DNA of 64,000 bases from Caecitellus pseudoparvulus (taxonomy: Eukaryota; Protista; Bigyra: Bicosoecida), in contig CBFFRQ010000067.1 of the NCBI GenBank assembly GCA_965644315.1, positions 310,001 to 374,000 of the forward strand, written 5' to 3'. Position 1 is the stretch's first letter. Each line of letters begins with the position of its first letter. This document shows, piece by piece, positions 24,888-30,515 of this stretch. The notes under the pieces are model-generated. The model was given only the letters and a program-made list of their open reading frames with translations, was not told where the DNA came from and did not search any database. The position numbers were made by a program, and so were the translations under genes.

Positions 24888-27800
24888 TCAATTCCATATT
24901 CCATTGCGCTGGAGCATGAAAAGCGCAGACTTGCTTCCCTGCTCCGCCGCCGCCCTGTACCACCGCACAGCCTCAGCATCGTCCTTCTCCACACCCATGC
25001 CGTGCGCGTACATACGACCAAGATTCGTCTGCCCCACCGCATGGCCCTGCTCCGCCGCCGCCCTGTACCACCGCACAGCCTCAGCATCATCCATATCAAC
25101 ACCCATGCCGTGTTCGTACATCGCACCAAGGTTTGTCTGGCCATCGGCATCGCCCTGCTCCGCCGCCGCCCTGTACCACCGCACAGCCTCAGCCTCATCC
25201 TTATCAACACCCCTGCCGTACTCGTACATCGCACCAAGGCTTGTCTGAGCAGCTGTCTGTCCCTGCTCCGCCGCTGCCCTGTACCACCGCACAGCCTCAG
25301 CCTCATCCTTATCAACACCCCTGCCGTTCTCGAACATCAAGCCTAGTTTTGATTGCCCCATTGCATCTCCCTGCTCCGCAGCTGCCCTGAACCACCGCAC
25401 AGCCTCAGCATCGTCCTTCTCCACACCCCTGCCGTACTCGTACATCATACCAAGGTTGAACTGGCTATCAGCATGACCCTGCTCCGCCGCCGCCCTGTAC
25501 CACCGCACAGCCTCAACATAATCCTTCGCCACACCCCTGCCGTGCTCGTACATCGCACCAAGGTTGTTGTGTCCCCCCGCATGTCCCTGCTCCGCCGCCG
25601 CCCTGTACCACCGCACAGCCTCAGCATCATCTTGCTCCACACCCCTGCCGCCCTCGTGAAGCAGACCAAGTCCCACCTGGGCCCATGCATCCCTCTGCTC
25701 CGCCGCCGCCCTGTACCACCGCACAGCCTCAGCCTCGTCCTTATCAACACCCCTGCCGTACTCGTACATCGCACCAAGGCTTGTCTGAGCAGCTGCCTGT
25801 CCCTGCTCCGCCGCCGCCTTGTACCACCGCACAGCCTCAGCCTCATCCTTATCCACACCCCTGCCGTCCTCGTACATCCAACCAAGACTCACCTGAGCCC
25901 ACGCGTCTTTCTGCTCCGCCGCCGCCCTGAACCACCGCACAGCCTCGGCATCATCCTTATCAACACCCATGCCTCTCTCGTACATCGCACCAAGATTCGC
26001 CTGTCCCCCCGCATGTCCCTGCTCCGCCGCCGCCTTGTACCACCGCACAGCCTCAGCCTCATCCTTGCCCACACCACTGCCGTACTCGTACATCACGCCT
26101 AGTTTTGATTGCCCCATTGCATCTCCCTGCTCCGCCGCCGCCCTGTACCACCGCACAGCCTGAGTCTCGTCCTTCTCCACACCCCTGCCATTCGCGAACA
26201 TCAGTCCAACCATCGTAATGGCCCGTGCATCTCCCTGCTCCGCCGCCGCCCTGTACCACCGCACAGCCTCGATGTGTTCCTTCTCTACACCCCAGCCGTC
26301 CGCGAACATCAAGAAAAGGTAAAACTGGCCGCTCGCATATCCCTGCTCCGCCGCCTCCCTGTACCACCGCACAGCCTCAGCCTCGTCCTTCGCCACACCC
26401 CTACCGTGCGCGTACATCCACCCAAGATTCGTCTGGGCCCACGCATGTCCCCGCTTCGCCGCCGCCAAAAAACACCGCACAGCCTCAGCATCGTCTTGCA
26501 ACCCTCCTCTGCCGTTTGCGATCATCATGCCTAGGCTGTTCTGCCCCCCCGCATGGCCCTGCTCCGCTGCCGCCCTGTACCACCGCACAGCCTCAGCGTC
26601 ATCCTTCGCCACACCCCTGCCGTGCGCGTACATCGCACTAAGGTTGTATTGTCCCTCCGCATGTCCCTGCTCCGCCGCCGCCCTGTACCACCGCACAGCC
26701 TCAGCATCGTCTTTCAACCCTCCTCTGCCGTTTGCGATCATCATGCCTAGGCTGTTCTGCCCCCCCGCATGGCCCTGCTCCGCCGCCGCCTTGTACCACC
26801 GCACAGCCTCAGCGTCATCCTGCTCCACACCCAAGCCCTGCTCGTACATACGACCAAGATTCGTCTGTCCCCCCGCATGGCCCTGCTCCGCCGCCGCCCT
26901 GTACCACCGCACAGCCTCGGCCTCATCCTTATCCACACCCTTGCCCTGCTCGTACATCGCACCAAGATTCGTCTGTCCCCCCGCATGTCCCTGCTCCGCC
27001 GCCGCCCTGTACCACCGCACAGCCTCAGCGTCATCCTGCTCCACACCCCAGCCGTTCTCGAACATCAAACCTTGCTTTGTCTGCCCAAACGCATCTCCCT
27101 GCTCCGCCGCCGCCTTGTACCACCGCACAGCCTCAGCATCATCTTTCTCCACACCCCTGCCGTGCTCGTACATCCAACCAAGATTCGTCTGTCCCCCCGC
27201 ATGGCCCTGCTCCGCCGCCGCCCTGTACCACCGCACAGCCTCAGCCTCATCCTTGCCCACACCCGTACCGTTCGCGTACATCGCACCAAGATTCGTCTGT
27301 CCCCCCGCATGGCCCTGCTCCGCTGCCGCCTTGTACCACCGCACAGCCTCGGCCTCATCCTTCTCCACACCCTTGCCCTCCGCGTACATCGCACCAAGAT
27401 TCGTCTGTCCCCCCGCATGGCCCTGCTCCGCCGCCTCCCTGTACCACCGCACAGCCTCCACATCATCCTTGCCCACGCCCGTACCGTTCGCGTACATCAC
27501 ACCAAGGTTGAACTGCCCCTCCGCATGTCCCTGCTCCGCCGCCGCCCTGTACCACCGCACAGCCTCAGCCTCGTCCTTCGCCACACCCTTGCCCTCCTCG
27601 AACATCGCGCCAAGGTTGTTCTGTCCCTCCGCATCTCCCTGCTCCGCCGCCGCCCTGTACCACCGCACGGCCTCAGCCTCATTTTTCTCCACACCCCAGC
27701 CGTTCTCGAACATCAAACCTTGCTTGGTCTGCCCAAACGCATCTCCCTGCTCCGCCGCCGCCTTGTACCACCGCACAGCCTCAGCCTCATCCTTATCCAC

Positions 27801-30515: not shown

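Follow-up and report, generated by a model that had tools for sequence, protein, structure and literature searches.

The 64,000-nucleotide window analysed here, from the bicosoecid protist Caecitellus pseudoparvulus (assembly GCA_965644315.1, contig CBFFRQ010000067.1, positions 310,001 to 374,000 of the forward strand), carries on its minus strand a single intronless gene, the C-terminal two thirds of which is an array of Sel1 repeats. This gene is best explained (probability roughly 0.58) as encoding the sensor array of a putative cytoplasmic recognition protein, made of a helical bundle, a pseudokinase, and a Sel1 solenoid, which has evolved in concert in the manner of the NOD-like receptors (NLRs). 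The features behind this explanation that have been demonstrated are the architecture of the protein, the location of its variable residues in a groove, the mosaic nature of its units, exchange between paralogues, and, in one paralogue, alleles that differ in their number of repeats. The repeat pattern alone is already known from fungi and brown algae; what would be new is a Sel1 sensor under concerted evolution on a bundle-pseudokinase chassis, and its evolutionary regime appears to match that of the fungal NLR sensors. The case that new specificities are selected is weak, and the idea of a special anchor for recombination is unsupported. An earlier note on this DNA had described the array and missed both the N-terminal bundle and pseudokinase half and the gene family. 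The features of the gene are as follows.

24888-30515, minus strand: whole gene, intronless; 1,875 amino acids from the first likely methionine, with the frame open from 30581
30081-30410, minus strand: predicted four-helix bundle (residues 36-145); AlphaFold helices, predicted local distance difference test (pLDDT) mostly 65-85
29832-30068, minus strand: linker helices (residues 150-228) in a brace-like position, low confidence (pLDDT <50 from residue 163)
28650-29840, minus strand: protein-kinase fold of a probable pseudokinase (residues 226-622, of which about 231-519 match kinases); model pLDDT 69
28521-28628, minus strand: degenerate first Sel1 unit
24957-28520, minus strand: 33 full 108-bp Sel1 units
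28069-28106, minus strand: example of the 38-bp homogenised helix-B block, at the junction of units 4 and 5, recurring each 108 bp
24888-24956, minus strand: C-terminal capping half-unit (22 codons) and stop codon

The minus-strand open reading frame (ORF) crosses the array without a stop or frameshift. Comparison with close paralogues, which begin at the same methionine motif, places the likely start codon at 30515, and the 1,875-amino-acid protein has no evident signal peptide or transmembrane segment. Tandem Repeats Finder reports a period of 108 with 33.4 copies and 0 % indels (24936-28538), and the Pfam Sel1 profile (PF08238) scores 1002 bits over 33 stretches, against a curated cut-off of 30.7, with a 36-residue helix-loop-helix period. 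The gap-free 108-bp array reported previously therefore stands, and its count of 34 units is refined to 33 full units, preceded by a degenerate one and followed by a cap. Between units, mean identity is 81 % at the nucleotide level (range 66-97 %) and 71 % at the amino-acid level, and it does not drop with distance along the array. Identity reaches 91.7 % over 108 amino acids at offsets of 5 and 6 units, which places the array among the NLR-type repeats of high internal conservation, defined by an identity of 85 % or more across 100 or more amino acids inside the array (PMC4986451). All 33 units are mutually distinct, which argues against expansion during assembly. That the number and order of units come from repeat mis-assembly is very improbable, because, in addition, the highest nucleotide identity is 97 % with no exact 108-bp duplicate, there is no frameshift, the array lies within an 876-kb contig, and paralogues on independent metagenome contigs are built in the same way.

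Within each unit, positions are numbered from the K/R of (K/R)AAAEQG, as before. In this register L15, G16, and Y19 are L7, G8, and Y11 of the TPR/Sel1 consensus, therefore positions 10, 13, 14, 17, 20, and 21 correspond to TPR positions 2, 5, 6, 9, 12, and 13. In HOP co-crystals these six TPR positions are the ones that touch the ligand, and among them are the most variable positions of the TPR family (PMC1261162). In the Sel1 protein c5321 (PDB 4BWR), the solved structure that matches the array best (E 3e-96), the concave face is made by helix 1 and is the less conserved one (PMC3851747). Register mapping thus places the variable sites in the concave groove. The earlier expectation that variable residues lie mostly on one helix face, in a concave groove, holds for these six positions and fails for position 23, which falls in the intra-repeat loop. 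The residue sets listed for positions 10, 17, and 23 were found exactly as given, position 20 toggles only between E and A, and positions 26 and 29, which had not been listed, vary too. There are 28 different groove hexads among the 33 units, and paralogous arrays vary at the same positions. Such variability is a general property of repeats of this kind and alone is no proof of diversifying selection.

The units are recombinant mosaics and the array is a fine patchwork. The pairwise homoplasy index (PHI) test gives p=0.0005 with a 3-site window, 0.005 with a 5-site window, and 0.07 with an 8-site window, bearing out the proposal that the units recombine, and the recurring variant blocks on which that proposal was based were located in units 3/8/14, 17/19, 23/30, and 26/31. 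The longest exact in-register tract shared by two units is 78 bp, and no tract spans a full unit. Distances for the left and right halves of the variable cassette are only weakly correlated (r=0.16, compared with r=0.11 across the helix-B block), so exchange points also lie inside the cassette.

Recombination extends to other loci. In two paralogues 70-130 kb away on the same contig, synonymous divergence from this gene is 0.08-0.12 in the helix-B block, and the N-terminal domains diverge by 0.27-0.29, which suggests that conversion between the loci has occurred recently; the N-terminal domains, too, are mosaics of paralogues. A metagenome allele of paralogue C36 has one extra Sel1 unit, in register, with its breakpoint at codons 6-9, the edge of the block. 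In the same environmental allele (L053:995-3703), compared with L043, an N-terminal tract of about 150 bp is nearer to the gene described here (0.90) than to its own locus (0.81), which suggests recent conversion between paralogues. No allele of the present gene was found in database and metagenome searches, the repeat-number difference being seen for the paralogue only, and the two flanks, scanned separately, contain no informative repeats. A diversity-generating retroelement target was considered and rejected, as each of the four bases gives rise to minority variants at a similar rate and the variation is not adenine-specific.

Helix B had been described as almost invariant even at synonymous sites. 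Synonymous diversity is indeed low in the 12-codon helix-B block (codons 31-6), at 0.087 compared with 0.383 elsewhere (p=0.002 in a post-hoc permutation that allows for choice of the best window and ignores autocorrelation along the unit). The block is nearly, not strictly, invariant: 12 of 32 junctions have the majority 38-mer exactly, and 26 of 32 have it with at most one mismatch. The contrast is also significant in the neighbouring paralogue C67c (p=0.011), is nonsignificant in seven other arrays, and most paralogues lack the synonymous freeze.

From this block it had been inferred that about 38 bp of invariant sequence act as a recombination anchor, and in its strongest form the block would be a dedicated initiation site or hotspot, possibly frequent or somatic, swapping whole variable cassettes. 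This is improbable. In line with it, many of the longest exact tracts span the block, although such tracts are expected over the most conserved part under any model. The only natural indel seen, that in the C36 allele, breaks at the block edge and fits the anchor idea, though it is one case only; the unexplained G-rich coding strand of these genes can also be counted in its favour. However, the cassettes are mosaic internally, with breaks inside them, the freeze is significant only here and in C67c, and the synonymous codons of the block differ from gene to gene, which rules out a conserved DNA motif as the anchor.

The depth of the contrast was compared with simulations, which are toy models with hand-set parameters. 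Uniform neutral conversion produced the observed block/cassette ratio of 0.23 in none of 120 runs. Homology-dependent conversion alone gave median ratios near 1 (0.9-1.5, with wide scatter), which does not help the anchor, and only runs that rejected conversions over groove residues shifted the median; where cassette diversity was realistic it moved to about 0.55, and 0.23 was rarely reached. The observed contrast is thus deeper than the simulations usually give, a point in favour of a dedicated site. The best reading of the block makes it the homogenised counterpart to a variable face that is protected; part of its depth is unexplained.

The first 622 residues have no match in Pfam, PDB sequence profiles, or ESM Atlas features. 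A model of the kinase region (residues 226-600, from a 25-sequence alignment, pLDDT 69) was used in a structural search, and the top 50 matches were all protein kinases; Foldseek and Atlas likewise returned only kinase-like folds, with weak scores. The top match was the rat MLKL pseudokinase (Z 12.0, root-mean-square deviation 4.9, 197 aligned residues, identity 11 %); the scores of IRAK4, BRAF, and a plant receptor kinase differ from its score by less than 1 Z. The catalytic Lys, HRD, and DFG positions look replaced in a by-eye reading of the alignment, the HRD and DFG positions being occupied by small residues, and the domain is therefore probably a pseudokinase. An earlier model of the whole N-terminal domain had a pLDDT of 42, with which Foldseek was uninformative, and hhalign of this domain with a kinase of the window gave no alignment. 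For the bundle (residues 36-145), structural matches were generic only (best Z 7.4). There is no Pfam match to a NACHT or NB-ARC domain; the central domain is a kinase fold in place of the nucleotide-binding NOD domain, and membership of the NLR/STAND proteins was rejected on this basis.

Selection on the array was assessed at the codon level. Pairwise nonsynonymous diversity (pN) is 0.45 at groove codons and 0.04-0.10 at scaffold codons, and synonymous diversity (pS) in the surrounding cassette is 0.38-0.40. The scaffold sites are under purifying selection. With the six groove sites fixed beforehand, omega in this gene is 1.24-1.39 (likelihood ratio test statistic 1.4-4.4), and in six paralogues it is 2.17, 1.94, 2.15, 1.60, 1.46, and 0.89, the last in the older paralogue C13; it thus exceeds 1.3 in six of the seven arrays. 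In neutral simulations of 33-unit arrays with conversion, omega was 0.72-1.10 (nine runs), and the value of 1.33 for this gene is above all nine. The family-wide trend favours mild diversifying selection, which is not established for this gene.

A number of results weigh against a selected sensor. Single-tree codon models for this gene are nonsignificant (M1a/M2a p=0.68; M8a/M8 p=0.31), so the diversifying selection previously proposed agrees with a groove omega above 1 and is not borne out by standard site tests. M7/M8 gives p=0.007 and is discounted, because M8a/M8 is nonsignificant and neutral sites can cause an M7/M8 signal. In neutral simulations of small recombining arrays, omega reached 2.46, with 14 % false positives in the fixed-site test, and several of the arrays share units and are hence not independent. 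Groove positions vary in all TPR-like families irrespective of role. The 0.23 ratio is regularly reached by none of the simulations, and the bundle has no specific match to a cell-death domain, no MLKL or HeLo entry being among its top 50.

The same codon models are also an argument for neutral repeat turnover, in which an ordinary Sel1 scaffold or a degenerate gene would expand by unequal crossover, its groove and loop being unconstrained (omega about 1) and no specificities selected. This is a distinctly less likely explanation. In its favour, groove pN is near the cassette pS, loop positions 23, 26, and 29 are about as variable as the groove, and C13 has a groove omega below 1. It does not sit well with the failure of uniform neutral conversion to reproduce the block contrast, with the elevated omega in most arrays, with an ORF that is intact over 35 units and a scaffold under purifying selection, or with a large family with swapped repeat types.

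In the recognition-protein reading, unequal crossover and gene conversion over short in-register tracts, both inside single members of the family and from one member to another, would homogenise the scaffold (helix B and the convex face) and reshuffle groove variants. Mild selection may spare groove variants from being overwritten, and linked synonymous differences in helix A would thereby be kept. The "frozen" block would then be the footprint of this homogenisation and protection, with no dedicated DNA element. More speculatively, a foreign molecule (viral, bacterial, or non-self) bound in the groove might switch the pseudokinase, and the switched pseudokinase might free the N-terminal bundle as a signalling or killing module, as in MLKL. 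A wider version of this reading is doubtful, and is to be considered somewhat less probable than neutral turnover. In it, about 80 genes would form an independently evolved NLR-like receptor repertoire, the chassis would be an MLKL-like bundle and pseudokinase, recombination seeded in the homogenised helix-B block would rapidly diversify the Sel1 or ankyrin sensors, and activation would kill or signal in the cell.

The genome (30.6 Mb, 215 contigs) was searched for related genes. There are 11 close copies of the N-terminal module. Ten of them carry Sel1 arrays, which range from a few units to 35, and the remaining one has no array; the array described here is the longest among the 11 close paralogues examined. 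A distant subfamily has at least 67 members, and those that were read contain ankyrin-like and/or Sel1 repeats. The bundle and kinase-fold module appears to define a family that numbers about 80 genes and has arrays of the Sel1 or the ankyrin type. Outside this genome, relatives among 1.84 billion representatives are limited to ten metagenome proteins, three of them near-identical to paralogues of the genome, and therefore the family looks lineage-restricted; a scan of Joint Genome Institute (JGI) metagenomes found no relatives.

Some members of the family differ in their arrangement. In L036:2678-8428 (minus strand), L039:2144-7528 (plus strand), and P0011, all of the distant subfamily, an ankyrin-like segment is followed by a Sel1 array. 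Units of C154 are up to 87 % identical to those of the present gene, although the relationship of the N-terminal domains is only distant (about 20 % between subfamilies), which suggests transfer of an array between subfamilies. L041:2126-7882 (minus strand) is a tandem pair of close paralogues, each with a short and more diverged array. In another Sel1 gene (L047:2063-7234, minus strand, and L051), Pro-Ala-rich linkers lie between higher-order repeats of about 603-609 bp. This gene is present on two contigs, with identical copies; it is possibly mis-assembled or very recent.

The comparison with fungal NLR TPR, ANK, and WD40 arrays made in the earlier note is accurate (PMC4986451, PMC1805685). 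As in the NWD/het-e genes of Podospora (PMC1805685, PMC4986451), the C-terminal repeats are near-identical and evolve in concert within and between loci, repeat number varies (here in a paralogue), variable sites are on the concave face, and there is an N-terminal helical effector-like domain. However, the repeats here are Sel1 (36 amino acids), the central domain is a kinase fold and not NACHT or NB-ARC, the host is a protist, positive selection is statistically much weaker, and non-self recognition is putative. MLKL and the plant MLKL-like proteins (four-helix bundle, brace, pseudokinase) resemble the present protein in the order of helical bundle, linker helices, and kinase fold, and the MLKL pseudokinase is the top structural match, with catalytic motifs apparently missing here. 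MLKL has no C-terminal sensor array, though, and given the similar Z scores of other kinases, the low identity, and a bundle with no specific MLKL or HeLo match, membership of the MLKL family is unproven.

Other systems are similar in part. The NB-ARC-TPR and LRR-ROCO candidate receptors of Ectocarpus (PMC3341825) also join a signalling domain to an array of shuffled repeats on which diversifying selection is suspected to act, and occur in a eukaryote that is neither animal nor plant. There, each repeat is one exon, whereas here the single continuous, intronless ORF rules out exon shuffling of that type. In Rhizophagus irregularis (PMC8647823), a lineage-specific expansion of kinase and Sel1-like genes is proposed to serve environmental perception; no sequence relationship to it was found, and in the present family the kinase has diverged beyond the reach of any profile and the arrays show internal homogenisation. 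E. coli c5321/EsiB (PDB 4BWR; PMC3851747) shares the 36-residue period and the less conserved concave face, but is a secreted stand-alone protein with 11 diverged repeats.

The gene may bear on how protists recognize viruses, bacteria, and non-self cells. Its candidate receptor family would reuse the diversification scheme of the fungal NLRs, with Sel1 in place of their repeats and a pseudokinase in place of their switch. The 3.7-kb intronless array can be typed with long-read amplicons across isolates or clonal lines, and the N-terminal bundle can be assayed, therefore the hypothesis is directly testable.

The base composition of these genes is skewed. In the gene at 24888-30515 and paralogues L037, L038, L041, L042, L043, and L044, the coding strand is strongly depleted of C at fourfold sites (0.09-0.13), compared with 0.28-0.49 in ten of 11 ordinary genes of the window (difference p 3.5e-22). 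The depletion is also seen in the homogenised Sel1 arrays C154 and C32 and is absent from the family members whose arrays are old and diverged, C57, C67d, C54, and C13. Cytosine deamination on the coding strand is unsupported as the cause, with recent variants at 0.27 per site for C>T and 0.29 for G>A.

Tail to tail with the Sel1 gene is a 1,814-amino-acid ORF with a Dicer/Drosha-like RNase III domain (18879-24323, plus strand), the 3′ half of which is likewise G-rich in its coding strand, so the skew flips at the junction. At 32301-32639, 6.3 tandem copies of a 54-bp repeat, 97 % identical, hold the stop codon of a small Lys/Ala-rich gene. The ORF at 31-6768 (minus strand) encodes 2,245 amino acids with cyclic-nucleotide-binding, protein kinase, and PP2C phosphatase domains.
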